Sequence record: NC_027399.1
DNA: 64,000 bases
Strand: one strand, 5' to 3'
Position numbers and translations under genes: made by a program. The notes under the pieces are model-generated. The model saw only the letters and a program-made list of their open reading frames with translations. It did no database searches and was not told where the DNA came from. Position 1 is the first letter of the stretch. Each line of letters starts with the position of its first letter. Positions 2,636 to 31,410 of this stretch are shown here, piece by piece.

Positions 2636-3064
2636 ATGAAAACATTAGAAGAATTAATTAGAATAAGTAAAAATATCATTTATATTAACAATGTATTCAG
2701 TACCGGAAAAGGTCATCTTATTATTGATGATGTTGAGTACTTTTATTCACACTTTTCTCATGTATGGTACAAATCATTCTATGTTCGTGGTTTTGATCCT
2801 CTGTGGGATTGTATTTCTTATTCCAGGAGTTTTAGTACAGTCACGACTATTACTTCTATACAGGAACATAATCACATTCTCGATTGTTCAGAATTTGATT
2901 TAAGTGAAGAGATGATTTTTCAGTACAGTACCATGTATTCCAATACTGAACTGGAAGCTATATTCGTTAAAGTGTACCTGGATAAATTCACTGATATAGA
3001 TGAATTTTGTATAAATCTCTCACAATACCCTTCGTATTGCGAAAAACTTGGATTAATACCATGA
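2636..3064 (+). CDS. family A (FQxS module) protein
   Basis: LSEEMIFQYSTMYSNTEL; start moved to ATG 2636. Confidence 0.75.
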   Translation: MKTLEELIRISKNIIYINNVFSTGKGHLIIDDVEYFYSHFSHVWYKSFYVRGFDPLWDCISYSRSFSTVTTITSIQEHNHILDCSEFDLSEEMIFQYSTMYSNTELEAIFVKVYLDKFTDIDEFCINLSQYPSYCEKLGLIP

Positions 3065-3477
3065 GTTACAGAAGTTCATTATTTTTTGCACAAAAGGTAT
3101 ACTATACCGTTCAGTGCTTTTATAATTCCGAATTTGATAATACAGTACTAAAAAAGACAGGAAATGACAGTGTATTTGATTACTACGATTATCAGAATTT
3201 ATTTTTTGGTTATCCGGTCTTCAATACTACACAGATGGATTGTCATATTTCTCTTGATTTTTCTTTTATGACATTCAATTCAAATAACATAGACTATATG
3301 TCACTCGATTCCGTGGTTAGATTAAATTCTGATAACATAGTGTTAATTCATAATAGCGAGGATTATGATTTCTTTAGTAATTCTTATACTGAAAAAGAAT
3401 TGTTTGTTTGTACTGTATTTTCGTACCTAATTCTTAACAAATGTAAACCATTCTATCTGGATTTGAGTATAATTTAA
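3061..3477 (+). CDS. family A-related protein (paralog of 4077)
   Basis: Shares SLFxAxKxYxTxQxFYNS and TxFSYLxxxKCxPFYxDLxII with 4077-4472; lacks FQxS core. Confidence 0.75.
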   Translation: MSYRSSLFFAQKVYYTVQCFYNSEFDNTVLKKTGNDSVFDYYDYQNLFFGYPVFNTTQMDCHISLDFSFMTFNSNNIDYMSLDSVVRLNSDNIVLIHNSEDYDFFSNSYTEKELFVCTVFSYLILNKCKPFYLDLSII

Positions 3478-3496
3478 AGAGGGGATTTTCATTATC

Positions 3497-4077
3497 ATGC
3501 TAGAGAATTNTTCCCTACAAAAGAGGAAGTTGGATTAGGTCATGTATCAGATTTGGATTATGATATTTACGTTGCTATGGTAATTGTTGGTCAAGCAAAA
3601 AATGTTCATGAAGTACATGAACGATTTACAAAACTAGAGAATGAAAGAAATTATACAAATGAATTGAAATCTGAACCTGAAATACAAGGTAGATTGTTTA
3701 TTGTAAAAAATACAAGAACATTAGAATTAATTTTGATACCTACTAAAGAAACATTTAATGAGATATCAAAAACCGAAGAATATCTTTTGAATAATCATGG
3801 AATTTCTTATAAATCAAAAGACTGGATTATAGACACAGTACTGTACGTTTCTCGCAAAGATAGAGGATTAACAAGAGTACATGATTTATATTCTTCTGTT
3901 CTAAAAATTGTTACACCAAATGAATTTGGAATATTCAGTCCAGAACAATATGATATAATCATGAACTGTATTAATGATAAAATATCAAGATGTTATAATC
4001 GTTGTGTATATCCAAATGGATATCATAGTAATAAAAATTTTCACTACAAATACAATGAAATATGGAATAAAGTATAA
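3497..4077 (+). CDS. hypothetical protein, reading frame broken by ambiguous base at 3510
   Basis: SD AGAGGGG + ATG 3497 joins the 3553-4077 frame if n stands for 2 nt. Confidence 0.6.
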
Positions 4078-4472
4078 TGAACAATAAAGAGTCCCTTTTT
4101 CTTGCTAAAAAGATATACAACACAGCACAACTTTTTTATAATTCAAGTTTCAACTGTACTGGATTTAAGAGAAGTTTTGTGGGGCTGGATTATGAATACA
4201 AATTTTCCAATTTAATTGTTTTCAGTACTGAAAATACATATGGCTGTTTCTTTTCTTTTAAAAAAAATATTATAATTTTTGATAATGAATTCGCCGGTAT
4301 AATTGAATGTGAATACGAAGATGGAACACGTAATTATCTTTCCCGTATAATGAATTTACATCAACAGTGCCAACCTGTGAATACAAAGGATAATATGTCA
4401 GTACTGACAATTTTTTCGTACTTAGCCCAGATGAAGTGTCAACCATTCTATATGGATTTACGCATAATTTAG
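4077..4472 (+). CDS. family A-related protein (paralog of 3061)
   Basis: See 3061; ends KCQPFYMDLRII. Confidence 0.75.
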   Translation: MNNKESLFLAKKIYNTAQLFYNSSFNCTGFKRSFVGLDYEYKFSNLIVFSTENTYGCFFSFKKNIIIFDNEFAGIIECEYEDGTRNYLSRIMNLHQQCQPVNTKDNMSVLTIFSYLAQMKCQPFYMDLRII

Positions 4473-4548
4473 GGGGTATATTTTGTGTTAAAAATTCACT
4501 GTCACAACGGTATATTTTTTTTGTAACACTGCAATACATAACGGAAAG

Positions 4549-4782
4549 TTGATTTATCATAAAAGTGAGGATTCTTTTTATTATACCCATGTGAATTCTG
4601 AAAAAATGCACAAAATTATTGATTATTCAGGATTACAAGAGGATGAACTTTTCCAGATGCATTTAGTATATGATAAAGTACTTAATTTGGATTTTTACAC
4701 TTTAACATATATTCAGACCAAAATGCGAGAATTATCAAAAATTTATACTGCTGATTTTAAGATTATAACACCTGAAATATAA
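4549..4782 (+). CDS. family A protein (short)
   Basis: DYSGLQEDELFQMHLVYD. Confidence 0.65.
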   Translation: MIYHKSEDSFYYTHVNSEKMHKIIDYSGLQEDELFQMHLVYDKVLNLDFYTLTYIQTKMRELSKIYTADFKIITPEI

Positions 4783-4783
4783 G

Positions 4784-5119
4784 ATGAATAAAAATATAAG
4801 AACCAATAATATTATGTGGTGCACTGTATATAAACTGATTTATACTACTTATGCTCTTATACGATTAGTTAGCAAAAATAATACAAAAATCGATGTTTAT
4901 TTCTATAATGACGGTACCAAAGAACATTACTTAACAGAGGGTAATGATATATATGAAATTCACGATTTATCCTCTTTGAGCACAGAAGAACATTTCCAAT
5001 TACTCACAGTATGGGATTATAAAACAGATATTGATTTTGTTATTTCTGCACATAAACGCATAGAGGAACTTAAAAAGGATGAGTTTTTCAATCGTGTCGA
5101 TACAGTGATTGAATATTAA
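4784..5119 (+). CDS. family A protein
   Basis: DLSSLSTEEHFQLLTVWD. Confidence 0.7.
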   Translation: MNKNIRTNNIMWCTVYKLIYTTYALIRLVSKNNTKIDVYFYNDGTKEHYLTEGNDIYEIHDLSSLSTEEHFQLLTVWDYKTDIDFVISAHKRIEELKKDEFFNRVDTVIEY

Positions 5120-5286: not shown

Positions 5287-5751
5287 ATGGGTTTTGATAC
5301 AAGAGAAGGTGCACTCTTTTATGCAAATCAAATATGTAATTTAGTTTTGTATTACAAAAGTAATGAAAATTTATTAGATGAATATAAATGTTTGTATTCT
5401 AAAGTCGATGATGTATTAAGAATTTCTTTAGAAATAGAACACAAAAACCCATTCCCTGAATCAATTATTGATTTTCAAGAAAAATATATTAATTATATTC
5501 CAGGTAAAGAATGTGAATTAATTCTTTCCGATGTATTTGGTCATAGTATCAAAATCGATCCCAGTGTTCTAAATGAAGAATTGAATACCAGTACAGAAGA
5601 AGGTTATTTCCAGAAGAGTACTATATACAATTCTGATGAATTGTTCTGCATTATTCTTTTTGAAAATATAGTACGTAAAATTCCTTTTCAATTCTACATT
5701 GATTTGGAAACAATTAATGACCTAATAAAAGAGAAAAATTATGCGATATAA
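5287..5751 (+). CDS. family A protein
   Basis: STEEGYFQKSTIYNSDEL...FYIDL; ATG 5287 has AAGGT SD. Confidence 0.75.
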   Translation: MGFDTREGALFYANQICNLVLYYKSNENLLDEYKCLYSKVDDVLRISLEIEHKNPFPESIIDFQEKYINYIPGKECELILSDVFGHSIKIDPSVLNEELNTSTEEGYFQKSTIYNSDELFCIILFENIVRKIPFQFYIDLETINDLIKEKNYAI

Positions 5752-6076
5752 AATATACAAAAGCGACCTCCTTGTTGTAGCTGAATACATTTGTGATGAT
5801 ATGTTCAATATGTTCAAAAATGAACATGATTTTATTTTAAATTTAAGTACTAAAAAATTTAAGTTGAACTATTATGGTTCATATGAATTATCTGAACACT
5901 ATTCAATTGATTTAAATGATTGTACTCAGATGCAGGACGATGAATTGTTTCAATACTCTTTAATTTTTGATTTTAATTTATTAAGTTTAAAGGATATTGT
6001 ATCGCTTCAAAAAGAAATGCTTACTATACAAGATGATACATATGGCACTAAAGAAATTAATTTTATTGACTTTTGA
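5741..6076 (+). CDS. family A protein
   Basis: DCTQMQDDELFQYSLIFD. Confidence 0.75.
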   Translation: MRYKIYKSDLLVVAEYICDDMFNMFKNEHDFILNLSTKKFKLNYYGSYELSEHYSIDLNDCTQMQDDELFQYSLIFDFNLLSLKDIVSLQKEMLTIQDDTYGTKEINFIDF

Positions 6077-6137: not shown

Positions 6138-6503
6138 GTGCATACAACTCAAGAAATACAAATAAAATTAAAAATTAATAATTATTATAATAATACAGTT
6201 AGTGCTTCATATAATGAAGAAGTTTTGTACGAAATAAATTATTCCATGAATGATTCCATTTTTACATTTCGTGAGTACAATGGTATCACTTTAATAAGAT
6301 CTTATATAATTCCAGTTATTGATTATACCGAAATGCAAGATGATGAATTGTTTCAGTACTCTTTAATATACGATCTGGAACATGTTATCCCCTTTGACTC
6401 TATGGTTGAATTGCAGGGTATTATGAAATTACGTACACAACTACAAGGAGAGATTGAATACACATTTAACACAATGAATAAGAAGAATTATTATGTACAA
6501 TGA
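6138..6503 (+). CDS. family A protein
   Basis: DYTEMQDDELFQYSLIYD; GAGG SD. Confidence 0.75.
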   Translation: MHTTQEIQIKLKINNYYNNTVSASYNEEVLYEINYSMNDSIFTFREYNGITLIRSYIIPVIDYTEMQDDELFQYSLIYDLEHVIPFDSMVELQGIMKLRTQLQGEIEYTFNTMNKKNYYVQ

Positions 6504-6732
6504 ATGTATTAAATCTCACATAGAAAAAATAACTCTAATGTCTCCTGAGTATTTTACTTTACGAAATGCAAAAATTTATCGTAAAATACAAAAAGATGTT
6601 GTTAATTATTATCTTTCATTGTACTGCAATGGAACTAAATCAAATTATATCATAATAGATATAAGGTCTATAATTGATGGTACATTTAGTATCCAGTACA
6701 GAGTGTACCAAAGGAGTTACAATCATGACTAG
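6493..6732 (+). CDS. hypothetical protein (possible family B)
   Basis: Coupled ORF; weak similarity. Confidence 0.55.
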   Translation: MYNECIKSHIEKITLMSPEYFTLRNAKIYRKIQKDVVNYYLSLYCNGTKSNYIIIDIRSIIDGTFSIQYRVYQRSYNHD

Positions 6733-9393: not shown

Positions 9394-9596
9394 TGAATGA
9401 TTTGGATTCACTGTTGTGGTATACTTTATCTGTTCTTTCATTTGAACGTGATAAACACAAAGTACGAGCTTCTAAAAATCCAGACATATTACAGAAAAAG
9501 AAAGAATACGCATTAGTGTATTCTTTGGAAAAATCATTTATTTCTATGCATCTGGAATACAGAGAATACATAACATCAAATGGTATTAAAAAATGA
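9393..9596 (+). CDS. hypothetical protein
   Basis: Coupled small ORF. Confidence 0.6.
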   Translation: MNDLDSLLWYTLSVLSFERDKHKVRASKNPDILQKKKEYALVYSLEKSFISMHLEYREYITSNGIKK

Positions 9597-9928
9597 AATA
9601 TAAATCCATAGTACACAAAAGATTTAAGTCAATATATTACACGGAAATTAATGTTCATAAAAAAGTAAAAGGTATTGATTTTTATATTGATAAAGTATAT
9701 CTGGATTATGATGTAGTTACTAATACATTCGAATGTACAGACCTCTTTGATTCAATACCAGTACCTAACTTGGCTGAATTGAGTGAAGAAGAAGAATTTC
9801 AGTACTCATTAGTATATGAAGATATATGGGGATTTAAATGGGATTATTATCGAATGGTGTCTTATCAAAAAGCACTAATATCCTCTATAAAAAAACAAAA
9901 TTACTTATTAATTAATCTGGAATATTAA
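9593..9928 (+). CDS. family A protein
   Basis: NLAELSEEEEFQYSLVYE. Confidence 0.75.
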   Translation: MKYKSIVHKRFKSIYYTEINVHKKVKGIDFYIDKVYLDYDVVTNTFECTDLFDSIPVPNLAELSEEEEFQYSLVYEDIWGFKWDYYRMVSYQKALISSIKKQNYLLINLEY

Positions 9929-13240: not shown

Positions 13241-13268
13241 TTGACATTTGTTAATTTTGTGATATAGT
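13241..13268 (+). promoter_or_regulatory. sigma70-type promoter heading the main family A array
   Basis: TTGACA-16bp-TATAGT with TG extension. Confidence 0.65.
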
Positions 13269-13847: not shown

Positions 13848-14243
13848 ATGTCATTTATGAAAGATAAAGAATATGCTGACATAATAATTAAAATTATAAA
13901 ACATTTAAAACAACAAAATTCTGATCTAGGAACTTCAAATTTTAATGAATATGCAAGCTTTGGATATTTGTGTTATAATTATAATGAACCAACATTGACT
14001 TATTTTTATGATAAAAAAGACAAAGATTTCGACAAGTTTTTAACTAAGATGGAAGCACTTTCATTTGATATCAGTACAGAAGAAGGTTATTTCCAGGCGT
14101 CTTTGATGTATCCAGATTCACAAATGCGAGTAATATTTTTATTTTCAGAATTGAAAAAGAATTTTAAAAATGATTCATTTGTTATTCCAATGAAGTTACT
14201 AAATGATAATTTAATATATAAAGGTTATGACTGTTATGTCTGA
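13848..14243 (+). CDS. family A protein
   Basis: DISTEEGYFQASLMY. Confidence 0.8.
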   Translation: MSFMKDKEYADIIIKIIKHLKQQNSDLGTSNFNEYASFGYLCYNYNEPTLTYFYDKKDKDFDKFLTKMEALSFDISTEEGYFQASLMYPDSQMRVIFLFSELKKNFKNDSFVIPMKLLNDNLIYKGYDCYV

Positions 14244-14625
14244 ATTTGAAAAAATTATTAAACGTTGTGAAATGTATTTTTCTTTTATTACCAAAAATAT
14301 AGAAAAAACAGAAAGAGAATATGTTTTAAAATGCGAATACAAAGATAATGGATTTATCTGTTATACACCAGAAAATGATGAATGTTATTTTTATTTTCCA
14401 GATCCAGAATTTGGTTCTTCTGGTATAAAAACAGAAATACCAAATGATGTTCTAACCGAAGAAGGATATTTTCAGTACTCAACTATTTTTGATAATGAAA
14501 AATTATTCAGTATGGTGTTAATGAAATATTTTAAAGATAATTGTGATTTTAGATTTTCTGTAGAGGCTACTGATTGTCTTTTTGATTTCCTACAAAGAAC
14601 AGTGTACAATGAAAATACTAACTGA
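14236..14625 (+). CDS. family A protein
   Basis: DVLTEEGYFQYSTIF. Confidence 0.8.
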   Translation: MSEFEKIIKRCEMYFSFITKNIEKTEREYVLKCEYKDNGFICYTPENDECYFYFPDPEFGSSGIKTEIPNDVLTEEGYFQYSTIFDNEKLFSMVLMKYFKDNCDFRFSVEATDCLFDFLQRTVYNENTN

Positions 14626-14803
14626 TAGTGATTGCTACAGAATATGTTCTGAAGTATCTTTAAACTCAATCAATAAAAATAAAGCACAACGTGCAGAACT
14701 AATATTAGTAAGATTTATGGGTACAAACTTTGAAGGAATTGCTTTGTATAATTATATGAATTGTTTAATGGAATATTGTAATGAGTTACATAACAGAAAG
14801 TAG
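14609..14803 (+). CDS. family C protein
   Basis: LILVRFMGTNFEGIALYNYMNCL. Confidence 0.7.
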   Translation: MKILTDSDCYRICSEVSLNSINKNKAQRAELILVRFMGTNFEGIALYNYMNCLMEYCNELHNRK

Positions 14804-15203
14804 TTACGAAAGAGATATTTTTATGTGTTCAGAAATAATGAGAATTCATGAACGATTTATTGGTCTTGATTCTTCTGCGTGGAGTTTCAGGGAGGATGCA
14901 TATTTAATTTTCAGCCCAGGAACCAAAAATCAAATACAGTACCATCTTTCATCACAAGAACGAAAAGAGTTATTTTTTAATAATTCTGCTTTTCTGAGTT
15001 CAATTGATTTGGATTATCCACTCAAAGAAGACCTTGATTTGTGTACAGAAGAAGGTTATTTTCAGGGTTCATTAATTCTTGACAAAAAATATTTAACAGT
15101 ATATACTATTTTTCAGTTCCTTGATAAAAATTGTAATTCTGCGTTCTCTATTGATATGGTACCTTTTTTGAAGGGGTTTAGACGAAAATATGAAAATAGT
15201 TGA
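14781..15203 (+). CDS. family A protein
   Basis: DLCTEEGYFQGSLIL. Confidence 0.8.
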   Translation: MSYITESSYERDIFMCSEIMRIHERFIGLDSSAWSFREDAYLIFSPGTKNQIQYHLSSQERKELFFNNSAFLSSIDLDYPLKEDLDLCTEEGYFQGSLILDKKYLTVYTIFQFLDKNCNSAFSIDMVPFLKGFRRKYENS

Positions 15204-15585
15204 TTATGATTACCAAAGGGATCTAGCTATATCTAATATCATTTTGGAACTCTGTGAAGATGATCCTTATTATACTGTAGTTCGAGGGTATAGTAATAAT
15301 GAATACAAAAGTGATGGGTTTTTGGTTTATTCCAATGGAACACCCGTAAATGAAATTCTTGTATTTCCAATGTTCAATGAAATACTACAAAAGAACATGG
15401 TACCAAATAAACTTGTTAAATTAGTCCAAACTGATTTGTTGTCAGAAGAATCATATTTTCAACATAGTACTTTATATGATGCGTTTGAATTACATGTTAT
15501 GTTTATTTTTCAGTACTTAATGAAATATAGTACACATTCAGTATCAATGCCAATGAGATCAATCTGGAATGAATATGAAAAATAG
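15190..15585 (+). CDS. family A protein
   Basis: DLLSEESYFQHSTLYD. Confidence 0.8.
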   Translation: MKIVDYDYQRDLAISNIILELCEDDPYYTVVRGYSNNEYKSDGFLVYSNGTPVNEILVFPMFNEILQKNMVPNKLVKLVQTDLLSEESYFQHSTLYDAFELHVMFIFQYLMKYSTHSVSMPMRSIWNEYEK

Positions 15586-16108
15586 TTATATCTATGACGA
15601 AAAAGAAAACAAAGATGAACTAATTCAACACATGACTATACAAGAATGTTTTGAATACGCTGATAAAGTAATTGATTTATATAATATCTTACATAATAAA
15701 CCAAAAATCAAAATACTCAATTTAGCTGAACTAGAGTCGGATAAATCAAGAAAACACAAATCTTTTGAATATACAAGTAATGATGATTTGGTTTATTCAG
15801 AAGATAATCATTATTTTGTTGGTACTTCATTTATTGAGATTTATACTGGAATACGATATATTCCAGAGAGTGTTCATAAAATATTAGGTATAACATCAGG
15901 TGGTGGAACATCAAACCTTATTGATATCGGTGATGTTATCATTGAGAACACTGAAGAGGATATTTTCCAGTACAGCACAGTTTACAATGATCACGAATTG
16001 AAGCATTTGATTATTTTAAGTGCAATTAAAAAGAATAAGTGTAGAGAGTTCTTTATGGATTTGAATTATTTGGAATTTTTATTAGATTATCATTATAACT
16101 TAAATTAA
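15569..16108 (+). CDS. family A protein
   Basis: ENTEEDIFQYSTVYNDHEL...FFMDL. Confidence 0.8.
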   Translation: MNMKNSYIYDEKENKDELIQHMTIQECFEYADKVIDLYNILHNKPKIKILNLAELESDKSRKHKSFEYTSNDDLVYSEDNHYFVGTSFIEIYTGIRYIPESVHKILGITSGGGTSNLIDIGDVIIENTEEDIFQYSTVYNDHELKHLIILSAIKKNKCREFFMDLNYLEFLLDYHYNLN

Positions 16109-16117
16109 AAAAACATC

Positions 16118-18163: not shown

Positions 18164-18660
18164 TGAATTGTGAATATAAAAAATCTAAACATATTACAGA
18201 TTCTTTGGTAAAGTTAATCAAATCAATACTGAACGGTGAAGTCGATGAACGACTAAACTATGATGACAGTGATGACATTATTAATGTTACATTAAAATCC
18301 AACAAAAAGAGTTATAGGAATTTATTTTCTACTGGGTGGTATTATAGTGAGTACTTACTTGAAGACAACTCTTCAATGGGATATCCAGAAACCCATTATT
18401 TTGCTTTTGACCCAAATGATAGTTCTCTTGTTGTTACTATTCGACAATGTAATGGTAAAAGAACAAGAGAGAAACTTAGTACAACTGGACTTAATATAGA
18501 TACAGAAGAAGAGTGGTTCCAGTATAGTACTTTATATAATGATAATGAATTATTTTCTATTATGTTATGGTGTGCATTTAAGAAAGAAAACTTCCCATCA
18601 TGTTTAGTCGAATTTTCAGAATTTTTCAAATATTTGGAAGAAACAAATGCTATTATCTGA
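18163..18660 (+). CDS. family A protein
   Basis: DTEEEWFQYSTLYNDNEL. Confidence 0.8.
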   Translation: MNCEYKKSKHITDSLVKLIKSILNGEVDERLNYDDSDDIINVTLKSNKKSYRNLFSTGWYYSEYLLEDNSSMGYPETHYFAFDPNDSSLVVTIRQCNGKRTREKLSTTGLNIDTEEEWFQYSTLYNDNELFSIMLWCAFKKENFPSCLVEFSEFFKYLEETNAII

Positions 18661-19228
18661 TATCAAATCTTTTAGTACTGAACTGGATGTAATTAAAAAT
18701 ATCATTATTAAGATGATTGAAATTCACAGAACTAAAAGACGATATACGTCTTTTAGCGAAGAAGGTTTTGAACTTGAGCGTGGATTGTTTCATATTGATT
18801 TGATGATTAGTGATTATGAATGTATTTTTAGTTTAAGAAACGATTCGTCTCAAATGAAAAATACTGGGATTGATTTATCCATTATTCCACATCATCAAAT
18901 TATACTTGGTGGTTCTGGAAACGTATACATTTCACCCTTCGAATCTGGATTTAGTAGAAGTATAGCTTTACCAAAAAATGAAGGTAGTGAACCTTACATT
19001 TTAATTAACGATGATGCAATTGATGAATGGAAATTCCAGTTAAGTACATTATACGATCCAATAATCGTTGATATAATCAACCTAGAAGAAGAACTAAGAG
19101 AGCACTTAGCCTCTTTGGAGCACAACAATAATGTATATGCACCTTTGTTATTGGTTGTTGATTTAAAATGTTTAGAAAAGAAAAAACACGATTTGAATTC
19201 TATGCTTGAATTTTTAGAGAACATATAA
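18647..19228 (+). CDS. family A protein
   Basis: AIDEWKFQLSTLYD. Confidence 0.8.
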   Translation: MLLSDIKSFSTELDVIKNIIIKMIEIHRTKRRYTSFSEEGFELERGLFHIDLMISDYECIFSLRNDSSQMKNTGIDLSIIPHHQIILGGSGNVYISPFESGFSRSIALPKNEGSEPYILINDDAIDEWKFQLSTLYDPIIVDIINLEEELREHLASLEHNNNVYAPLLLVVDLKCLEKKKHDLNSMLEFLENI

Positions 19229-19231
19229 AAC

Positions 19232-19840
19232 ATGAAATTAGAATATTTCCCAAATTTAGAATACAAACATTGTATTGCTTATTCAATGTTTGTGGAAGAT
19301 TTAATTAACGCATTACATGATCCAGAAATACGAAGAGAATGTGGAATTATAAGAATAGAAAATGATAGATTTTATATCAACACTGGAATTAGAAAAATAG
19401 ATCTGGATATATTAAGTGTAGATACAACCTCTACACCAACATTGATTTCTTCCAGAGTTGGTAATTTCGAATTTTACTGGACTCACTGTTATGAATTCAA
19501 TAAAGATTCTAAACATGATTTTATGATAGATGGTGATTTGTGCGAAAAAATTAAGTACAGTTATGACTATACAGAAGAAATGTTCTTTCAAAACAGCTTA
19601 TTATACAAAAACTGTGATTTGTTTTATATTATATTATTCAATTATTTAAAATGTAATTTAAATCATTCATTCTGTATGGCATCTGCACCCATCCCTGAAG
19701 ATTTTTTTAAATTAATTCCAAATTTACTTTACATTGCTACCGAAAAGGGGTATTATGGTGATCTGTTAGAGTTGATGAAAAACATTCATCCAAATAACAA
19801 CGATAAAAGTTCATATCTATCAGGATTTAGCAATCTATGA
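19232..19840 (+). CDS. family A protein
   Basis: DYTEEMFFQNSLLY. Confidence 0.8.
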   Translation: MKLEYFPNLEYKHCIAYSMFVEDLINALHDPEIRRECGIIRIENDRFYINTGIRKIDLDILSVDTTSTPTLISSRVGNFEFYWTHCYEFNKDSKHDFMIDGDLCEKIKYSYDYTEEMFFQNSLLYKNCDLFYIILFNYLKCNLNHSFCMASAPIPEDFFKLIPNLLYIATEKGYYGDLLELMKNIHPNNNDKSSYLSGFSNL

Positions 19841-20400
19841 CATACGAAGAATACAAAAAGACAATACCAGTACTCGCTGAAATTGTTTCATTACTAAAAA
19901 ATCATCTAAGTAAAAGAACCATATACAACGATAGATTCTTCACCTTACCCAAATCCAATTTTTATATAAAACAAATCAATGATGCTGATATTGACATAAG
20001 AATTTCAAAAAATAGTGATTCTATTATTCGCGTTGCAAAAGAATCTCAGTGTTTTGATGGAGAGATTCCTATGTTACTTCGTCAGTTCGGTGATGTATAT
20101 TGTTCATCCAGAAAACACCCAGGGTATATTAAAATATATTCAAGTGAAAGTGACATAGATTTACTTGATGTTGACTGCCCAGAAGAGCAATTATTTCAAT
20201 ACAGTACAATTCTTTCTAATATTGATCTTATCGTGCTTGAACTTGAGTTAGAACTTCAAAAAGTACTAAACGAAAATATTTACTGTGTAATTACATTGTT
20301 CTATGATAATGATTACTATAGTGAATGTGCTTCATATAATGATTATGTAAATCTACGAGATGATTTAAAAGATGAAAAAAGAACATGGGAACATTATTAA
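19837..20400 (+). CDS. family A protein
   Basis: DCPEEQLFQYSTIL. Confidence 0.8.
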   Translation: MTYEEYKKTIPVLAEIVSLLKNHLSKRTIYNDRFFTLPKSNFYIKQINDADIDIRISKNSDSIIRVAKESQCFDGEIPMLLRQFGDVYCSSRKHPGYIKIYSSESDIDLLDVDCPEEQLFQYSTILSNIDLIVLELELELQKVLNENIYCVITLFYDNDYYSECASYNDYVNLRDDLKDEKRTWEHY

Positions 20401-20956
20401 TAACTTAAAAGTTATTAAAGAATTAAGCACTGCTATGATTTTGTTGTACAAAAATACAGACAAAATTAATGCTGATAATTATATTCTAAGTACTACCAGA
20501 TTAAATCCATACGAAAATGGAACATTGTACTTGAGAACAAAAGCATCTCAAAATATCATTGGAATTATGAATGAATCAGTTTGCCTGGAAGAATATGCAT
20601 ACAAAGATGAAGAGGTACCTGGTAATTACAGGGTTATTATACGAGATTCGGCATTCTTCTTATGTAGTCCGATGAATCCATTTTTCAATAAAATATATGC
20701 TGATTTTAATTATACAAATGGTGTTGAAACTTTTCCTATTCCCAGTGAAGATACATGGGAAGAAGAGATGTTTCAACTATCATTAGTAGTACCAAATATG
20801 GTATGTTCCGAAGTACTGGAATTATATAAAGAAATACACAATAATATTGAAAGTCATTTTTATATTTCATATGAATATGAAAATTATGATACCACATTAT
20901 TAAAAGATGCATTAAATGACGTTAAAAAATTTATCAAGCACTACATCAACAAATGA
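20372..20956 (+). CDS. family A protein
   Basis: DTWEEEMFQLSLVV. Confidence 0.8.
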   Translation: MKKEHGNIINNLKVIKELSTAMILLYKNTDKINADNYILSTTRLNPYENGTLYLRTKASQNIIGIMNESVCLEEYAYKDEEVPGNYRVIIRDSAFFLCSPMNPFFNKIYADFNYTNGVETFPIPSEDTWEEEMFQLSLVVPNMVCSEVLELYKEIHNNIESHFYISYEYENYDTTLLKDALNDVKKFIKHYINK

Positions 20957-21494
20957 TACTGAAATGTACTTATTGTACAAAAATATTTTACTTGAATTAA
21001 AAAGATTATTGCATACTGTTAATGTACGCGATAATTATCTACATCAAGATATAAATGGTGAAATTTATTGTATAATTTCTGATGGTAAAATCGCATTATA
21101 TGCTAATTCCGAAAATATAGCATTCACTTATGTTTTATTTGCTTATTCGTTTAATTCACCAAATTACGTATCAGAAAAATATAGAGTAGAATATGATTCA
21201 TATGTATACTTTGATCGTGATAATTCAACTAATGAATATATGATTAATCACGAAACAAATAATATCATCCAATTGATTAAAGAAAATGAGTTGAGTTCAG
21301 ATGAATTAGAAAGTTTATTATTCCAACACAATACATTGTATTCAGATGAAGATAAATTTTGTATTTGGATGGATTATTATATCAGAGATTACATTGAAGA
21401 TAAACATTATTTCTGTGTAAACTATAACAAATTAAATGAATTCAGTACTGATATATATGAAAATATTCTATTGGAATTAAAGAAATATGATTGA
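20916..21494 (+). CDS. family A protein
   Basis: ELESLLFQHNTLYSDED; start uncertain. Confidence 0.75.
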   Translation: MTLKNLSSTTSTNDTEMYLLYKNILLELKRLLHTVNVRDNYLHQDINGEIYCIISDGKIALYANSENIAFTYVLFAYSFNSPNYVSEKYRVEYDSYVYFDRDNSTNEYMINHETNNIIQLIKENELSSDELESLLFQHNTLYSDEDKFCIWMDYYIRDYIEDKHYFCVNYNKLNEFSTDIYENILLELKKYD

Positions 21495-22098
21495 ATTAAA
21501 ATTTAAAATACAAGAACTAAAAGAACTGGTAATTCACTTAAAGAATGTAAATGATAAATTCCATCTCTCAGAAAATTTCATGATTTATATTCCAGGTACC
21601 GAATCAACACTCATTCACGAAATGTCAACAAAAGGGATATATTCCAATATTACATTGAAATCAAGAGATTACAAAACTAATATCTATTACAACACCATCT
21701 CTTTAATCAGGAGTTCAGATCCCTCTGAAGAACGTATCAGGAAATCTAAAACAGTAGGTTCAATTTATAGTAGTTCATGTAATATATATTCTTTATCCGA
21801 TAATACCAAAATGCAGATTGGTATATATGAAAACTATCATAGAAAGTGTGATACCAGTGAAAATGGAACTATTGAATTGCCTGATTATGTAAAAGATTCT
21901 GATGAATTTGAAGCATTATTATTTCAATACAGTACAGAGAGTGATATTAAGTACAATAGATTATTAAAAATGCGTATCATAAAAGAAATATATGATGTAC
22001 TTCAATATGAAGAAATATCAATCGATGATACTTTATTTGATTTGGATTCAAATGATTTGAAAACAATTATACAGGAATTGAAATTAAAATTATGCTAA
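21487..22098 (+). CDS. family A protein
   Basis: EFEALLFQYSTE. Confidence 0.8.
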   Translation: MIELKFKIQELKELVIHLKNVNDKFHLSENFMIYIPGTESTLIHEMSTKGIYSNITLKSRDYKTNIYYNTISLIRSSDPSEERIRKSKTVGSIYSSSCNIYSLSDNTKMQIGIYENYHRKCDTSENGTIELPDYVKDSDEFEALLFQYSTESDIKYNRLLKMRIIKEIYDVLQYEEISIDDTLFDLDSNDLKTIIQELKLKLC

Positions 22099-22655
22099 CA
22101 TTGTCCGAAATTCTGGAATACGATAATAAAATTATCAATCTCTTGGGTGATATATCATTTGAATTCAACAAAAAAGAAGATAAAAACAACAATAAAGCCA
22201 CTATACTGAAAGTAAATGATAGTGAATTAGTTGTATTAGAAAATAATCTTCATTTTTATTCTGTTGTACTTAAAGTGTATAATGGTATGTCAGAAACTCC
22301 GTGGTATATGGTGAAAAACACAGATGATTATGATACATTTCGTGGTATTAAACCATTCATCAACGAGTATGGTATTTTTTGTACCGCAAATGATTACGAT
22401 GTATTATATGATGAATACGATCAATTCGGTACTGTTCATAACGTACTAACAGAAGAACAGTACGCTTGTATAGAAAGCACTGCGTTTCAGTTGAGTACAG
22501 AGTTTGATTTACAAGTAGTAAGGGCATTATCAATGCAAACCAATTTGTATTACAACAAAAGACACTATCAAATAATGTGTAATACAAAAATTCAGGATCA
22601 TTTATATAATCCAAAATTAATTTTAAATCTAGAAAAATATCTGGAAACACTATGA
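22092..22655 (+). CDS. family A protein
   Basis: IESTAFQLSTEFD. Confidence 0.8.
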   Translation: MLTLSEILEYDNKIINLLGDISFEFNKKEDKNNNKATILKVNDSELVVLENNLHFYSVVLKVYNGMSETPWYMVKNTDDYDTFRGIKPFINEYGIFCTANDYDVLYDEYDQFGTVHNVLTEEQYACIESTAFQLSTEFDLQVVRALSMQTNLYYNKRHYQIMCNTKIQDHLYNPKLILNLEKYLETL

Positions 22656-23143
22656 AAGAAATTATTGAATTAATAGAATTGATGCAGTCAAGTATAAGTT
22701 CATGTAAACTTGCAACCGGTGAACATAATTTGAATGCTGATTTTGATTTAGTAGTCAATAATCAAAAGAAATGTATTCACTTGATTAAAAAATCCAGTAC
22801 TAAAGCAATCAAACATACAGCACTCATGATAGCTTCTTCACATCCTGCTAAAAAATATAATTCAAATATTGCTAATATAAGTTCACTGTACAAACCAGAA
22901 AGTACATCTTCATATATCAGTTCAATTAAAAGTGAATTAGATTTTCATAAATGCACTTTGGATTCTTATGAAGAATTAGAATTTCAGTACAGTACGGTAA
23001 TTACACGAAGTGATATTTTTATAATTCAATGCTTGTTATATTCAATTGATTTTAAAGATAATGTGTACATGACAAATGATTTTATGAAATATAATTATAT
23101 TGAAATACTCAGATCATTAAAGGACAAATTATGCCAAAATTAG
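22652..23143 (+). CDS. family A protein
   Basis: DSYEELEFQYSTVI. Confidence 0.8.
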   Translation: MKEIIELIELMQSSISSCKLATGEHNLNADFDLVVNNQKKCIHLIKKSSTKAIKHTALMIASSHPAKKYNSNIANISSLYKPESTSSYISSIKSELDFHKCTLDSYEELEFQYSTVITRSDIFIIQCLLYSIDFKDNVYMTNDFMKYNYIEILRSLKDKLCQN

Positions 23144-23721
23144 ATGCACAGTACTGTGATAAATTACTGAATGCATTGATTACTATACAAAAGAATATAA
23201 AAAAAGAAAAGAGTATTCAAATTTACTATAATGATAGTTATATTCTTGTACAATGCAACCCAGATGGTAATTATGTAGAGTTCAGTTTAAAGAAAGAAGA
23301 TGTTCATGATTGTATTAGTATTGATTTGCATGAAGCAACACCGCATCAAAGTTTAAAAAATATTATTAAAGCATATAAAAGAACTACTTATGCATTTGAC
23401 ACGTTAGTTCACAGATATAAAACATTTTATTGTATGTTTGATACAGACGAATATGATTTCAATTTAGTAGGATTTGATGAAAACATCATTAGCATTCCTT
23501 ATGATTTTGATGATGAATTATATTTTCAGTACAGTACTTTATATAGTTTACCACCACAGAGTGATCTTGAGCTTCACAAAAGTATTCATAAAAAATGCAA
23601 AAATGAACTACCAAATAAAAGTGTAGTTAGAATTTCATATCTATCCATCGAATTAGATCAACAAGAAATGGATGAAATTCTGGAATCTTTGTATTCATTG
23701 GTTCCTGTGTTTAAGCATTAA
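23131..23721 (+). CDS. family A protein
   Basis: DFDDELYFQYSTLYS. Confidence 0.8.
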   Translation: MPKLDAQYCDKLLNALITIQKNIKKEKSIQIYYNDSYILVQCNPDGNYVEFSLKKEDVHDCISIDLHEATPHQSLKNIIKAYKRTTYAFDTLVHRYKTFYCMFDTDEYDFNLVGFDENIISIPYDFDDELYFQYSTLYSLPPQSDLELHKSIHKKCKNELPNKSVVRISYLSIELDQQEMDEILESLYSLVPVFKH

Positions 23722-23724
23722 AAT

Positions 23725-23758
23725 CCCCCTTGACTGGGGTTTTTTTATTTGTTATAAT
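23725..23758 (+). promoter_or_regulatory. terminator hairpin overlapping a sigma70 promoter
   Basis: CCCC..GGGG-T7 hairpin; TTGACT(23730)-17bp-TATAAT(23753). Confidence 0.7.
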
Positions 23759-23777
23759 AAAAAATAGAGAATATAAA

Positions 23778-24404
23778 ATGAAAAAAGAATCATATAACAT
23801 ACTTCGTGTATGTGAAAATTTAATATTGTTGTTACTGGCTTATAAGAAAAATATAAATTTAAGCAAGAAAATTCTTGATTATCATATTAATATTAATATT
23901 ACTTGTAGTAATCATATTTCAATATATTTAAATATTAGTAATTTTGGTTCTATTACAACAACATCATCCAACATCATTTCATTTAATGCTGATAATATTC
24001 AACCAGTTGAATTAAATTTACCAATTGAAGATATTAAAGGTGAAATGATTTATTTTGATGACCGATATTGTGAATATGATGTTAATAGTCCAAATTTAGT
24101 AGGAGCGTATTTAAAAAAATATGATCCTGATATTGATGGATACAATGAAACAAATTGCCATGAAGTAATGGAAAAGACGTATGATGAATGGGCTTTTCAG
24201 TACAGTACATTATATGATTTTGTTCCAGATAAAGAAGATTATTTTTACTTGAAAAATTTCATGCATAATTTGGGTAACGAATTCGATTATACATATTCAA
24301 ATATTTTATTTGAATCAAAAGTGGATATTGTGAATCTAAAATCTGCAATTGATATATGTACCGAAACTGTTAAAAGGAAGATTGATGAAAACTCCGATAT
24401 TTGA
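23778..24404 (+). CDS. family A protein
   Basis: TYDEWAFQYSTLYD. Confidence 0.8.
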   Translation: MKKESYNILRVCENLILLLLAYKKNINLSKKILDYHININITCSNHISIYLNISNFGSITTTSSNIISFNADNIQPVELNLPIEDIKGEMIYFDDRYCEYDVNSPNLVGAYLKKYDPDIDGYNETNCHEVMEKTYDEWAFQYSTLYDFVPDKEDYFYLKNFMHNLGNEFDYTYSNILFESKVDIVNLKSAIDICTETVKRKIDENSDI

Positions 24405-24900
24405 AAAATCAAAGAAATATGCACAACGTATATCTGATTGTATTGAACTTATACAATTAATGAGAAAAACTTTTTACGTAAATCACAAAGGTTCTTTTCG
24501 ATATCAACATGAAAATAATGGACTTATTACCATGAGCAGAGGCAAATCGCCTTTTGGTGAGGTTATATTAACATATGTACCAGATAATATTCATATTCCG
24601 TTCAATGATAATTATCTAATAGAAATATCAAATTATATTCCAGTACTAGATTATACAGAAGAAACCGAATTTCAATATAGTACTTTGTATAATAATGAAG
24701 AATTGTTAATGCATTATATATATTCCATTCTATGGAATTTGAACATCAAAGGGAAAATTCATATAAACCCAAAAATAAATTTAAGAACATATACAATGGC
24801 ATTGAAAAATATGTATAGTTATTTTCAGGACACAAATTATAATTTATATAAAGAATTGTGTAATAAAAAATTCAAATCAATGGAAATAAACTACTTATGA
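24385..24900 (+). CDS. family A protein
   Basis: DYTEETEFQYSTLYNNEEL. Confidence 0.8.
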   Translation: MKTPIFEKSKKYAQRISDCIELIQLMRKTFYVNHKGSFRYQHENNGLITMSRGKSPFGEVILTYVPDNIHIPFNDNYLIEISNYIPVLDYTEETEFQYSTLYNNEELLMHYIYSILWNLNIKGKIHINPKINLRTYTMALKNMYSYFQDTNYNLYKELCNKKFKSMEINYL

Positions 24901-25888: not shown

Positions 25889-25908
25889 ACTAATACAGGT
25901 AACGATTC

Positions 25909-26460
25909 ATGTCAGAACCAATAGAATATTTTAAAGCATGTTCTCGTTTGGTTAATTCAATTTCAAAGGATTTTTTATCAAGAAAACCAAAAGAGTATAT
26001 TGATGATGTACTTGGATATAATTTTATATTATATTATGGTTTTAGTTCATTAAGAATTTCAGTTGATGATGAAAACGAAACACCTGTACTTACAATGTTT
26101 AATGTTGATCACATCACATGTAACCCAGAAGTATTTCATGAACCACGTTGGTGCCTACCTAATATTGTTAACAGTGGTGTTCAATGTGGTTTTGTGAAAA
26201 AAATTGACCACCGTTTTGATTCAGACGATGAACTCAGAGAACACGAGAATGATTTTAGTGCTAAGTTATTCTCTGATACTTTAACTGAAGAAGAATATTT
26301 TCAGTACAGTACGGTGATGAAATTAAATACATTGGAATATTATCTGGAATGGAATAAAACTATAATGCAAGACAATACAAATGAAAAAGTTGTTTGGCAT
26401 TGGTATTATGGTGATTTCATTTCAAAAGAAGCTATTGATGAATTATCAAAAAGAATATAA
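25909..26460 (+). CDS. family A protein
   Basis: DTLTEEEYFQYSTVM. Confidence 0.8.
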   Translation: MSEPIEYFKACSRLVNSISKDFLSRKPKEYIDDVLGYNFILYYGFSSLRISVDDENETPVLTMFNVDHITCNPEVFHEPRWCLPNIVNSGVQCGFVKKIDHRFDSDDELREHENDFSAKLFSDTLTEEEYFQYSTVMKLNTLEYYLEWNKTIMQDNTNEKVVWHWYYGDFISKEAIDELSKRI

Positions 26461-26472
26461 TAAGGATTAAAA

Positions 26473-26961: not shown

Positions 26962-27391
26962 CGATAGCGTATATAAGTGTATTGAGCATTTTGATTATTT
27001 TATTAATTCAAAAAAAGAATTTATTGTGGTTGATTGTATACCATTGTATTTCATTAAATCCGATTCAAATACAATCAAAGAATTTAATATGTACTATGGT
27101 AGTGAATTTATATCAATTAAATTAATCAATAAATGTTTGAAAAATTCTTATTCAATTGAAAGTTATTACAATGGAATATTTTTGCTCGGTATTAGCAATG
27201 AGTACATCAATTCAGTACTATTAAAATCAAACACAAATGAACCAGTTTATGCTGATCGAGAAGCATTCAATGAAATCGATTTCTTCCAGTATACATGTGG
27301 TGATGCTTATATACCATTACACACCAATACGATGTGTTTAGTTAAAGATAAATTGTTGGAGATTGAAAATGATTTCAAAAAATACTATTAA
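26945..27391 (+). CDS. family A protein
   Basis: FNEIDFFQYTCG. Confidence 0.65.
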   Translation: MLTQPDDSVYKCIEHFDYFINSKKEFIVVDCIPLYFIKSDSNTIKEFNMYYGSEFISIKLINKCLKNSYSIESYYNGIFLLGISNEYINSVLLKSNTNEPVYADREAFNEIDFFQYTCGDAYIPLHTNTMCLVKDKLLEIENDFKKYY

Positions 27392-27860
27392 AACTGGAAT
27401 GCAATGTTTGATTGATTATTTTGAAAATTCTAAATTATGCCCTGAAGTGCTGAGAGGCGATCACACATTTCATTACTACGGTGATGATATTCAGATTATA
27501 GTTGGATTTCATACATTAAAACTTTGTATTATTGATAATAAAAATTCAAATTGTTTTATTTTCTCTCCAGTAAAAATGCGAGAAGATGATATTTGCACCG
27601 AATTCGGGACTATTGTTGCTGTAATTGATGATGATGGTAGAAAAACACATGTATACGATACACTATTCATTGAAAGTTCTACATTGTTTCAATTGAGTTT
27701 AATTCATGATATCAATATTGATGGATTGGATATATTGATGTATAAGTATAGTGAATTACTTGAATTACTAGGGAAATCTAAAATTAATCACAATACTAAA
27801 TACATTAAAGAAGCATGTGATAATTTATCAAAAGCTCACGTGCAATACTCTAACGAATAA
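27363..27860 (+). CDS. family A protein
   Basis: IESSTLFQLSLIHD. Confidence 0.7.
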   Translation: MKMISKNTIKTGMQCLIDYFENSKLCPEVLRGDHTFHYYGDDIQIIVGFHTLKLCIIDNKNSNCFIFSPVKMREDDICTEFGTIVAVIDDDGRKTHVYDTLFIESSTLFQLSLIHDINIDGLDILMYKYSELLELLGKSKINHNTKYIKEACDNLSKAHVQYSNE

Positions 27861-28378: not shown

Positions 28379-28382
28379 TATT

Positions 28383-29749: not shown

Positions 29750-29772
29750 ACTAAACAAGAAGGATTAAAATT

Positions 29773-30159
29773 ATGCGTGATGAAAAGACAAGTAAAATTC
29801 TAAAAGCAATCGGTGGTGTTCTTATTATTGATGTAAAAGGAGAACCAAAACTTTGTGCTATGGAAGATCTAAAAAAATCAAAATTCTTTGATATTGGATC
29901 ACTCTTCAATGCTATCCGAGTGCTGAATAATAAAGAAGTTGAAGATTATGGTCTTAAATGGCCTACATACCGTGATGCTTCAGGTGAAATCAGCAATTCA
30001 TGGAAAACAATTCAGGAAGTACACAGTCGTTCTGATAATGATTGGGACTTTATCGTTGCTGTCTGTGAACAACTAAATGAAGAAGTACCTGAAGTACTGG
30101 AGAAATATATTGTATTACAAAATCTGGATAGTTTTCGTAATGGAACTTTGCAGTACTAA
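29773..30159 (+). CDS. hypothetical protein
   Basis: AAGGA SD. Confidence 0.75.
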   Translation: MRDEKTSKILKAIGGVLIIDVKGEPKLCAMEDLKKSKFFDIGSLFNAIRVLNNKEVEDYGLKWPTYRDASGEISNSWKTIQEVHSRSDNDWDFIVAVCEQLNEEVPEVLEKYIVLQNLDSFRNGTLQY

Positions 30160-30189
30160 TTAACAAAAAAAACATAAAGGAATATAATA

Positions 30190-30477
30190 ATGAAAGAACA
30201 AGATATGGATATGGAATACGATTTTATTAAAATTGAAGAAGGTGAAGAGAGTGAACAAGTAAGTACACAACTTGTTGCTAATACAAAACGTTCAATGATT
30301 GCCCGCAAACCAACCAGAACGCAGGAGGAATATGAATCGTTTATTGAATCAAAATACACAGAAGTCCATTATATGCAAGATGGTACACCATATGACGTCA
30401 CCGTTACAGTACTGAAACCTGAAGTTAATGATCTTGAAGGCTTAAAACAGTGCTACGCATACCAAACACGTAGTTAA
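30190..30477 (+). CDS. hypothetical acidic protein
   Basis: AAGGA SD. Confidence 0.7.
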   Translation: MKEQDMDMEYDFIKIEEGEESEQVSTQLVANTKRSMIARKPTRTQEEYESFIESKYTEVHYMQDGTPYDVTVTVLKPEVNDLEGLKQCYAYQTRS

Positions 30478-30486
30478 TATATTAAA

Positions 30487-30517
30487 GGCAGAGATGTACT
30501 CTTCTCTGCCAATTTTT
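30487..30517 (+). terminator. intrinsic terminator
   Basis: GGCAGAGA-loop-TCTCTGCC-AATTTTT. Confidence 0.7.
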
Positions 30518-30549
30518 AATTTAAAACAAAAATAAGGTTTAGTAGATAT

Positions 30550-31410
30550 ATGAAATTATATTTTTTATTTTCTTTTGCTGAAGATATGTATGGATTTGCA
30601 GAAGATGCAGAAAGTGATGGAATCTCATCACATACCAGGCATCAAAAACACCCACATGAGTTTTATAATAATTTATTCATGTTTATGCAATATAAAATTT
30701 TCTCATCTGAATTTGATAATTTAGATCACCCATGGGAATTACCTTTAATTGATATTCCAGACGAATACGTATTTCAGTTCATGTTAATGGGTCTGGAAGA
30801 CTATGACTTAGTTGTTTATAACTACAGAACTAAACGCATTATGCTTGGAACTCACGATAGTTCCATTGTATATGTTTCAAGTACTAATGATGAGTTAGCG
30901 TCTGATGAAGGTAATTATAGAAAATCTTATGGTTATATAGAAAATGATAATGATTTTATTTTAGATTTTCGTGTATCAGAAGAAGAAAGAAGAAAAAGAG
31001 AAACTTATCAAGTGGAGTTAAAACCAGATAATGGTTATAATGAAATTTTGGAAGTACTTAAACCATACTACCTTGATATTGTTTATAAGAAATATAAACG
31101 CCTGCTAAATCATCTTAGCGAAAAAGAACCAATTGGTTTTGAAACCAATTCATTACGTAATAGCATCATATTTCCACCTAGAGTAATGAAATATGGTGAA
31201 GTTTCTAAACACAAGATGAAACTATATCCAGATGATATTGAAGTTCTATATCATTCGTGGTTGAATAATGATGAACTATATGTAGAAAATAAAAAGTTAA
31301 TGCGTATAAGTAATAATGATGATAGATTGCTACAAGCGTGGTATAATGATTCATATTCTGCATTTACTGACAGTAATTCTGAGTATTGGAAGAATACAGG
31401 ACAAAACTAA
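30550..31410 (+). CDS. hypothetical protein with N-proximal family A-like motif
   Basis: DIPDEYVFQFMLMG. Confidence 0.7.
   Translation: MKLYFLFSFAEDMYGFAEDAESDGISSHTRHQKHPHEFYNNLFMFMQYKIFSSEFDNLDHPWELPLIDIPDEYVFQFMLMGLEDYDLVVYNYRTKRIMLGTHDSSIVYVSSTNDELASDEGNYRKSYGYIENDNDFILDFRVSEEERRKRETYQVELKPDNGYNEILEVLKPYYLDIVYKKYKRLLNHLSEKEPIGFETNSLRNSIIFPPRVMKYGEVSKHKMKLYPDDIEVLYHSWLNNDELYVENKKLMRISNNDDRLLQAWYNDSYSAFTDSNSEYWKNTGQN

Follow-up and report, generated by a model that had tools for sequence, protein, structure and literature searches.

Why should a bacteriophage keep some thirty small and highly dissimilar genes side by side, nearly all marked by one short motif? The question is raised by a 64,000-nucleotide stretch (the window) of Klebsiella phage K64-1, a RaK2-like jumbo myovirus of the genus Alcyoneusvirus with a genome of 346.6 kb. 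The window corresponds to positions 248001-312000 of the + strand, is 100% identical to AB897757.1 / NC_027399.1 and has a G+C content of 25-35% across its whole length. An earlier note on this DNA had described an array of about 33 tandem paralogs sharing the motif [ST]-E-E-x-x-F-Q-x-S-[TL]-x-Y, and had taken them for adaptors in which a constant C-terminal docking module plugs diverse N-terminal domains into one hub. Profiles built from external proteins confirm that the paralog family is real, although the supported count is 31-32, and we conclude with moderate confidence that its members are built as a single alpha/beta domain with variable inserts, not as a docking module on different domains.

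The family genes all lie on the + strand, overlapping or abutting, and their open reading frames (ORFs) are labelled "hypothetical protein" in all of the K64-1, RaK2, KP13-7 and Muenster annotations. Together they occupy ~15 kb, or ~4% of the 347-kb K64-1 genome, a share that is similar in related coliphages. The strict regular expression E[ED]..[FYW]Q.[ST]..[YF] gave 13 matches, every one of them on the + strand while the other five frames had none, BLASTP single linkage of the window ORFs joined 16 of them, and an iterative hidden Markov model (HMM) built from window ORFs converged at 29, with leave-one-out E<1e-6 for ~21. Given the circularity of such profiles and the AT-rich proteome, an independent test with external sequences only was made. 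A profile made from 23 members found, among 1.84 billion representative proteins, only 97 homologs (E<=1e-3), 68-201 amino acids (aa) in length and with the motif in nearly all, 71 of which were <50% identical to every window ORF. An external-only HMM of 70 proteins from other phages or sources, each <50% identical to any window ORF, then recovered 31 window ORFs at E<=0.005 with no reversed decoy at E<=0.1, and a pooled iterative search over five loci again returned 31 window ORFs and 0 reversed decoys. A chance or low-complexity artefact is excluded by the one-strand strict motif, the decoy-free external profiles and a ratio of nonsynonymous to synonymous substitution rates (dN/dS) of ~0.2.

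From 13848 to 24900, F-Q is present in each of 24 consecutive ORFs, all of them family members (21487-22098 borderline, the other 23 firm), and further members were found at 2.6-9.9 kb (nine) and at 25909 and 27369; members range from 77 to 224 aa. The extent first proposed for the array, most ORFs from 13848 to 27860 plus outliers at 2.6-10 kb and 30550, therefore holds as far as 24900, for the two genes beyond it and for the nine upstream copies, but the family profiles give no support to 24897-25481, 25478-25888, 26473-26961, 26912-27391, 27902-28378 or 9930-10463, even though 26912-27391 and 9930-10463 contain a degenerate FQ motif. The ORF at 30550-31410 was excluded outright (profile E=160).

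The motif regular expression is positive in 25 of the 31 members and degenerate in the rest, and F-Q is absent from some full-length members (3061-3477 and 4077-4472). Weighted over 123 sequences, conservation within the motif is 82% and 88% for the two E, 100% for F, 100% for Q, 96% for S, 97% for T/L and 68% for Y; the 100% values of F and Q arise partly because the alignment was built from motif-bearing sequences, whereas the count of 24/24 consecutive ORFs is positional and clear of this ascertainment bias. Mean column identity of the family is only ~10%. Conserved positions elsewhere in the same 123 sequences are hydrophobic residues of the N-terminal helix, two strand aromatics (Y/F 91% and Y/F 80%), an L-rich helix after the motif and the last strand, F...Y-I-D-L. 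The motif precedes the C-terminal segment as the earlier note had stated, but its distance from the C-terminus is 50-92 aa and not 40-70 aa; the hydrophobic helix and conserved strand said to follow it are both present, the helix as a prediction. Two known short patterns, a tobacco etch virus-like protease site (E-x-x-Y-x-Q-G/S) and a clamp-binding peptide resembling Q-L-S-L-F, were compared with the motif and set aside, as their variable positions misfit and the motif lies in the best-modelled helical core.

The motif Ser is encoded by both AGY and TCN codons, which places the constraint at the protein level as had been proposed, in agreement with the dN/dS of ~0.2; the 24 motif nucleotides share a mean pairwise identity of 64%. 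Codon choice at the motif is nevertheless biased: CAG encodes the Gln in 19 of 25 members (background 26%, p=2e-7), a Tyr following it is TAC in 14 of 16 (background 24%, p=2e-7) and the Ser is AGT in 14 of 24 (p=0.002), with the same trend in the PBECO4 array. This bias produces eight exact in-frame copies of CAGTACAGTAC (Q-Y-S-T), e.g. at 2921, 16478, 17437, 17996, 22985, 23527, 24198 and 26302. The palindrome AGTACT occurs 161 times in the window compared with 13.6 +/- 3.5 in dinucleotide-preserving shuffles (e.g. at 150, 347, 967 and 63410), and GTAC 492 times compared with 292 expected from a maximal-order Markov model or 167 from base composition, the sites being evenly spread over all three codon phases and intergenic DNA. 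The over-use of CAG, TAC and AGT in the motif is in large part due to this window-wide excess, which, acting across all codon phases, largely explains away a nucleotide-level function for CAGTACAGTAC; a leftover preference for CAG where the next codon is not TAC (6 of 9 members) is not accounted for by it. The excess, of which the RaK2 paper makes no mention, points to selection at the DNA level in favour of a site, possibly one for modification or protein binding, whose avoidance would ordinarily be expected of phages.

Conservation is distributed unevenly along the protein. Over the C-terminal ~55 aa, conservation is much stronger than in the N-terminal part, and an external profile of the motif plus C-terminal region scores 50-75 bits on core members against <=22 bits for an N-terminal-only profile. 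To that extent the proposed division into a constant C-terminus and a variable N-terminus is borne out, but the external N-terminal-only profile still matches 12 members in the window at E<0.01, with a single reversed decoy scoring 0.036, and for the long forms N-terminal homology rests on AlphaFold topology and full-length HMM alignments. Two members were modelled with AlphaFold2. In the 165-aa product of 18163-18660, a helix (2-23) is followed by an unmodelled insert (30-70), three strands, the motif helix (115-122), a second helix (127-141), a strand and a last helix, and the 196-aa product of 23131-23721 shows the same order of elements with six strands in place of three. The motif segment is the best-modelled part of both (predicted local distance difference test, pLDDT, 80-91). 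BFVD models of paralogs from Muenster, SP27, 121Q and RaK2 agree with the first model at a template modelling (TM) score of ~0.5 over 164-175 columns and at 12-20% identity. The models thus share the C-terminal elements, as foreseen, and the N-terminal order as well.

Fusion to another domain was found in none of the 97 homologs, and the short copies at 4.5-9.9 kb do without the N-terminal part. Members differ in length through inserts and additional strands that lie after the N-terminal helix and before the conserved C-terminal half. The single-domain reading is based on the N-terminal-only matches, full-length conservation, agreement between models and lack of fusions, and with one full-length fold found by profiles and models at moderate confidence, the modular architecture of the earlier note gives way. 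As predicted, the fold would comprise an N-terminal amphipathic helix, conserved and part of the fold, a beta-meander of 3-6 strands with variable inserts and the helix [ST]-E-E-x-x-F-Q-x-S, followed by a turn (T/L-x-Y), a second hydrophobic helix, the strand F...Y-I-D-L and a last helix.

How old the copies are was approached through their distribution. In 50,697 phage records searched by tblastn, relatives were limited to the nine records of Alcyoneusvirus and to coliphages of the Asteriusvirus type together with their Salmonella relatives, and a neighbouring non-family gene has the same restricted distribution; external homologs come mostly from uncultured assemblies, three contigs of which carry tandem arrays (5/5, 21 and 28 members). 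Among the Asteriusvirus coliphages, PBECO4 possesses a syntenic array of ~39 members upstream of the same genes, including those for Dam methylase and cytidylyltransferase, and shares 15 colinear reciprocal best hits with K64-1 (Spearman 0.84, p=8e-5) at ~25-30% identity. Phage labels are near random on the family tree (63 changes vs 69 in shuffles), a pattern that ancient paralogs should produce, but so would a tree of poor resolution. Within Alcyoneusvirus, KP13-7 has all members with no change in copy number. Recent DNA duplication or gene conversion was excluded, since repeats in the array are confined to motif-spanning stretches of <=53 nucleotides that are 62-83% identical and paralogs are at most ~30-40% identical over partial lengths. 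Judged from these comparisons, the array is old and stable, with copies diverged nearly to the detection limit, and it is older than the split between Alcyoneusvirus and Asteriusvirus. Pooled dN/dS of the family against KP13-7 is 0.20, compared with 0.17 for neighbouring small genes and 0.12 for the 32-64 kb part; measured against KP13-7 and Muenster, it is 0.23-0.24 up to the motif and 0.15 for the motif and what follows it. Values of ~0.2 indicate real genes under purifying selection.

Sigma-70-type promoters had been placed at 13241 and 23730, and sites are indeed found there: each matches the consensus at 11/12 positions, has an extended -10 TG, falls in a gap that separates annotated genes and is kept in KP13-7, Muenster and RaK2, its promoter activity being a prediction. 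Of the 12 best sigma-70 matches in the window, 5-6 fall in the intergenic 6% of sequence, and the gaps within the PBECO4, L007 and L010 arrays hold 11-12/12 matches, often with TG. Besides the terminator-like hairpin that overlaps the second site, another follows 27860. Sigma-70-type promoters likely drive the array, and the family probably belongs to the early products of infection; in phage CBB, the corresponding region is taken to be early by the authors who described it (PMC5259590). Literature searches turned up no transcriptome of an Alcyoneusvirus or Asteriusvirus. In RaK2, all structural proteins identified by mass spectrometry or bioinformatics belong to two other gene clusters (PMC3622015), and ORF378-439 are all annotated "hypothetical" and none as structural in the GenBank record. 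On this literature and GenBank basis, family members are not among the reported RaK2 virion proteins, as internal proteins of the T4 type or inner-body proteins of the phiKZ type would be. The members are acidic, with a median isoelectric point (pI) of 4.85 and net charge of -9, compared with 6.8 and -0.25 for other window ORFs.

Searches of reference collections placed the family outside characterised domains. No Pfam family was matched by more than 1 of 123 members and none reached its cut-off, no NCBIfam family was matched, PADLOC gave one chance-level match only, and the family profile found nothing in the PDB at E<=10 by hmmsearch. Foldseek against the PDB gave best E values of 0.33 for the 165-aa model and 0.16 for the 196-aa model (TM about 0.2), and because model confidence is moderate a distant fold match could have escaped it. 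In PHROGs, members are spread over many separate clusters of "unknown function" with cross-matches between profiles; window members match phrog_12674, phrog_9317 and phrog_22855, among others, but the unity, motif and array structure of the family are not recorded there. A word-indexed search with the family alignment returned six unnamed or "hypothetical" proteins only. The RaK2 paper states that paralogues make up ~10% of the proteins of RaK2 and neither names, delimits nor analyses the family (PMC3622015), and no description of it appears in the papers on CBB, phAPEC6, Sharanji and fEgEco12 or in a comparative survey of jumbo phages. The statement that no functional description exists therefore stands for Pfam, NCBIfam, PADLOC, PHROGs and this literature. 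The family is new, undescribed and without detectable relatives; its kind, a lineage-specific expansion in a jumbo phage, is known.

What, then, might the array do? The reading that we favour, and hold with about as much belief as doubt, is that of an ancient multigene family of early host-interaction proteins, each copy with a different target. Host sigma-70 RNA polymerase would transcribe the array early, in at least two long polycistronic transcripts that begin at the promoters of the rare gaps. One stable scaffold would have been diversified into about 30 non-redundant binders or inhibitors of host or competitor proteins, which could serve host takeover or counter-defence like the multigene families of large eukaryotic DNA viruses; this diversified-binder step is the least certain of the explanation. 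The helix-turn-helix hairpin containing the motif would act as the fold's core, with specificity supplied by the sheet surface and the variable inserts. Such a structural role of the motif is suggested by the S/T-x-x-E patterns at both helix starts, which resemble capping boxes, and by helix spacing (not coordinates), which puts the variable x positions on one helix face and the conserved ones on two adjacent faces.

Several observations weigh against this favoured reading. F-Q is kept in every one of the 24 consecutive ORFs, which are otherwise <20% identical, an invariance that exceeds usual structural need and would fit a shared partner or ligand. The dN/dS of the family is no higher than that of neighbouring small genes (0.20 vs 0.17), giving no sign of a current arms race. 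The models are moderately confident overall (pLDDT 68-69), one with a 40-residue unmodelled insert, N-terminal homology is statistically supported for 12 members only, and the promoter scan as a whole is at chance (160 observed vs 157 expected).

It is the unusual F-Q invariance that keeps alive the strongest competing explanation, in which the E-E/F-Q/S hairpin attaches to a single hub of phage or host origin (candidates are a protease, RNA polymerase or ribosome) and the variable surface binds targets, so that each paralog of an adaptor or decoy library brings in or blocks a different one. We consider this unlikely, though it is the foremost rival. Invariant F and Q and E, E and S at >=82-96% amid ~10% mean column identity, the unbroken run of F-Q along the array, and a C-terminal segment with most of the profile score and the lower dN/dS all speak for a common partner; yet the same residues sit in the most confidently modelled, helical and packed part of both models, occupy two adjacent helix faces with the variable x on the third when judged by helix spacing, and include patterns like helix caps, and the full-length members 3061-3477 and 4077-4472 manage without F-Q. 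An LGF/IGF-type ClpP-docking signature was not noticed by eye, no motif search for it having been made. The fullest form of the idea, a universal dock for one machine that ~30 paralogs retarget or block against ~30 substrates, is more doubtful still; if true, it would be a form of combinatorial host takeover undescribed in bacteriophages, on a fold without known relatives.

The remaining readings, all less likely than a shared hub, differ in what the conserved segment or the copy number would mean. An array of immunity or antitoxin-like proteins, each neutralising a different toxic effector (a host abortive-infection toxin, the toxin of a toxin-antitoxin pair or an effector of a competing phage) as in bacterial tandem immunity-gene loci, would suit small, acidic, single-domain cytoplasmic proteins in long tandem arrays with many diverged copies kept long-term. 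We think it improbable, since Pfam, including its immunity families, gave no match and PADLOC only the chance-level one, Foldseek found no immunity-protein fold and no cognate toxins are evident in the array, and it would in any case be a special case of the diversified-binder explanation and not a distinct mechanism. A hairpin that oligomerises, with paralogs co-assembling inside the cell or the virion in the manner of inner-body and internal-protein families known from other large phages, is very improbable: an interface-like conserved segment and many co-expressed paralogs would suit co-assembly, and the abstract of the phAPEC6 paper mentions a capsid inner body, but RaK2 virion mass spectrometry places the structural proteins in other clusters and ORF378-439 include none annotated as structural, the main text of the structural paper on phAPEC6 names none of its gp404-460, and location and promoters suit early, not late, genes. 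Least probable of all is a small enzyme or a sponge-like, small-molecule-binding protein with E-E...Q...S as the active or ligand site. The clustering of invariant polar Q, S, E and E is what such a site would show, but all conserved polar residues fall in one 8-residue helix with no second polar cluster in the domain, it is hard to see why one activity should need thirty non-redundant copies, and no enzyme or sponge family or fold was matched (best Foldseek E 0.16-0.33).

Comparison with described systems gives the proposed host-interaction family its closest analogies. The Bcl-2-like and ankyrin/PRANC families of poxviruses and the multigene families MGF360/505 of African swine fever virus are tandem sets of diverged paralogs that share one small fold and sit in a variable part of the genome, and are thought or shown to bind different host proteins. 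The likeness lies in the many tandem, highly diverged paralogs; there is no relation in sequence or fold, and the K64-1 family is single-domain and belongs to a phage of a bacterial host. Poxvirus PRANC adaptors, the model behind the hub proposal, combine N-terminal ankyrin repeats with a C-terminal F-box-like motif that binds the Skp1-Cullin-F-box (SCF) ligase, and no Ank, F-box or PRANC Pfam match was found among members; bacteria are not known to have SCF ligases. The 196-aa model had chains of p32/gC1qR (MAM33; 1yqf and 6szw) as its top, non-significant Foldseek matches. The p32 fold likewise has one helix before antiparallel strands and then C-terminal helices, and is strongly acidic, but with E=0.16-0.9, TM 0.18-0.22, a root-mean-square deviation of 15-19 A without superposition and no Pfam MAM33 match, the resemblance is a lead only. 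Bacillus phage G carries ~35 zinc-ribbon copies as a lineage-specific expansion (PMC7824862). There, too, a jumbo phage gives several percent of its genome to one small-protein family; the difference is the zinc ribbon, which the K64-1 family lacks.

About 30 diverged copies, kept since before the genus split and under purifying selection, point to about 30 distinct tasks, performed most plausibly within the first minutes of infection, for a family without a name, Pfam entry or solved structure that nevertheless takes up ~4% of the genome of a therapeutic-candidate Klebsiella phage. Should members inhibit defence systems or host proteins, the array would amount to a ready library of new inhibitors on a new scaffold; if they are dispensable, it would be a candidate for removal when genomes are trimmed for engineering. 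Experimental access is offered by those relatives in Asteriusvirus, Sharanji among them, that have E. coli K-12 as a host.

Table 1. Family members and predicted transcription signals in the window (positions 1-64,000; all on the + strand). External E values are those of the external-only HMM; pTM, predicted TM score.
Position	Feature	External E	Further data
2636..3064	member, 142 aa as annotated, FQYST	1.2e-18	PHROG phrog_12674, 2e-40
3061..3477	divergent member, degenerate motif without F-Q	1.9e-7	match over full length
4077..4472	divergent member, degenerate motif	2.5e-6	33% identical to 3061..3477; weaker call, reversed sequence also scores in in-window HMM
4549..4782	short member, 77 aa, beta part and motif only	3.5e-4	in pooled search
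4784..5119	short member, 111 aa	4.4e-3	leave-one-out E=3.4e-5; in pooled search
5287..5751	member, FQKST	7.6e-20	best PHROG phrog_9317
5741..6076	short member, FQYSL	6e-6	
6138..6503	short member, FQYSL	9.1e-6	
9593..9928	short member, FQYSL	2.6e-5	
13241..13268	sigma-70-like promoter, TTGACA-16-TATAGT with TG		in 126-bp gap before main array
13848..14243	compact member, 131 aa	1.4e-21	N-terminal part alone E=2.9e-6
14227..14625	member	1.6e-19	
14781..15203	member	1.3e-16	
15190..15585	member (RefSeq only 15397-15585)	7.1e-17	full length in Muenster, RaK2
15569..16108	member	2e-21	
16118..16639	member	1.8e-12	
16629..17120	member, top-scoring copy	7.3e-26	
17110..17601	member	3.7e-23	
17573..18163	member, start per Muenster (RefSeq 17687)	4.7e-12	
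18163..18660	member, first AlphaFold model	1.9e-21	pLDDT 68, pTM 0.60
18647..19228	member, long form	2.1e-7	
19232..19840	member, long form	2e-13	best PHROG phrog_22855, 1.5e-96
19837..20400	member, long form	4.7e-10	
20372..20956	member, long form	6.5e-9	
20916..21494	member, FQHNT	2.1e-7	
21487..22098	borderline member, LLFQYST		in-window HMM E=9.6e-4; missed at 1e-3 in pooled search
22092..22655	weak member, AFQLST	1.4e-3	in pooled search
22652..23143	member	4.5e-6	
23131..23721	member, second AlphaFold model	7.4e-6	pLDDT 69, pTM 0.65
23720..23743	terminator-like hairpin		overlaps next feature
23730..23758	sigma-70-like promoter, TTGACT-17-TATAAT with TG		in gap before 23778
23778..24404	member	2.2e-4	
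24385..24900	member, sole clearly basic copy, pI 9.1	5.5e-13	
25909..26460	member	1.1e-7	
27369..27860	weak member, LFQLSL	3.3e-3	in pooled search; reciprocal best hit PBECO4 30141-30638 (coordinates of locus L003), E=7e-12

Member lengths grow along 13848-24404, from 131-140 aa (13.8-15.6 kb) through 163-179 aa (15.6-18.7 kb) to 187-209 aa (18.6-24.4 kb), and a similar gradient in PBECO4 suggests old sub-family blocks. The K64-1 RefSeq annotation shortens at least two family genes (to 15397-15585 and 17687-18163) for which Muenster and RaK2 have full-length calls, and places several tiny minus-strand ORFs within them (e.g. 15239-15370 and 26995-27078). For 25478-25888, a non-family gene inside the array, the Muenster ortholog gp123 is labelled "putative ADP-ribosyl transferase, HHpred 4GV2_A 99.8%", a label not reproduced by Pfam and PDB sequence searches, which gave nothing.

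Across the whole 64-kb window, searches for transfer RNA genes and Rfam families found none. The rate of synonymous substitution against KP13-7 is ~0.095 in the small-ORF region (1-32000) and 0.054 in 32000-64000, home of the metabolic genes. Near the border of the two, 740 bp (31411-32150) contain no + strand ORF of at least 50 aa and have bidirectional terminator-like hairpins at 31414-31437. The small-ORF region also holds a second paralog family of seven ORFs of ~60 aa (7228-7431, 10469-10648, 10645-10821, 10818-11009, 12649-12858, 12842-13036 and 13038-13220) with the motif L-G-T-N-[FY]-Q and invariant E, T and Q; as a relative of the main family it was excluded by hhalign (probability 0.3%). 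A third small paralog group consists of five ORFs (1737-2021, 2082-2357, 6674-7006, 8196-8468 and 8453-8764), the first and last of which are membrane proteins according to RefSeq, and 666-1013 and 7003-7227 form a further paralog pair.

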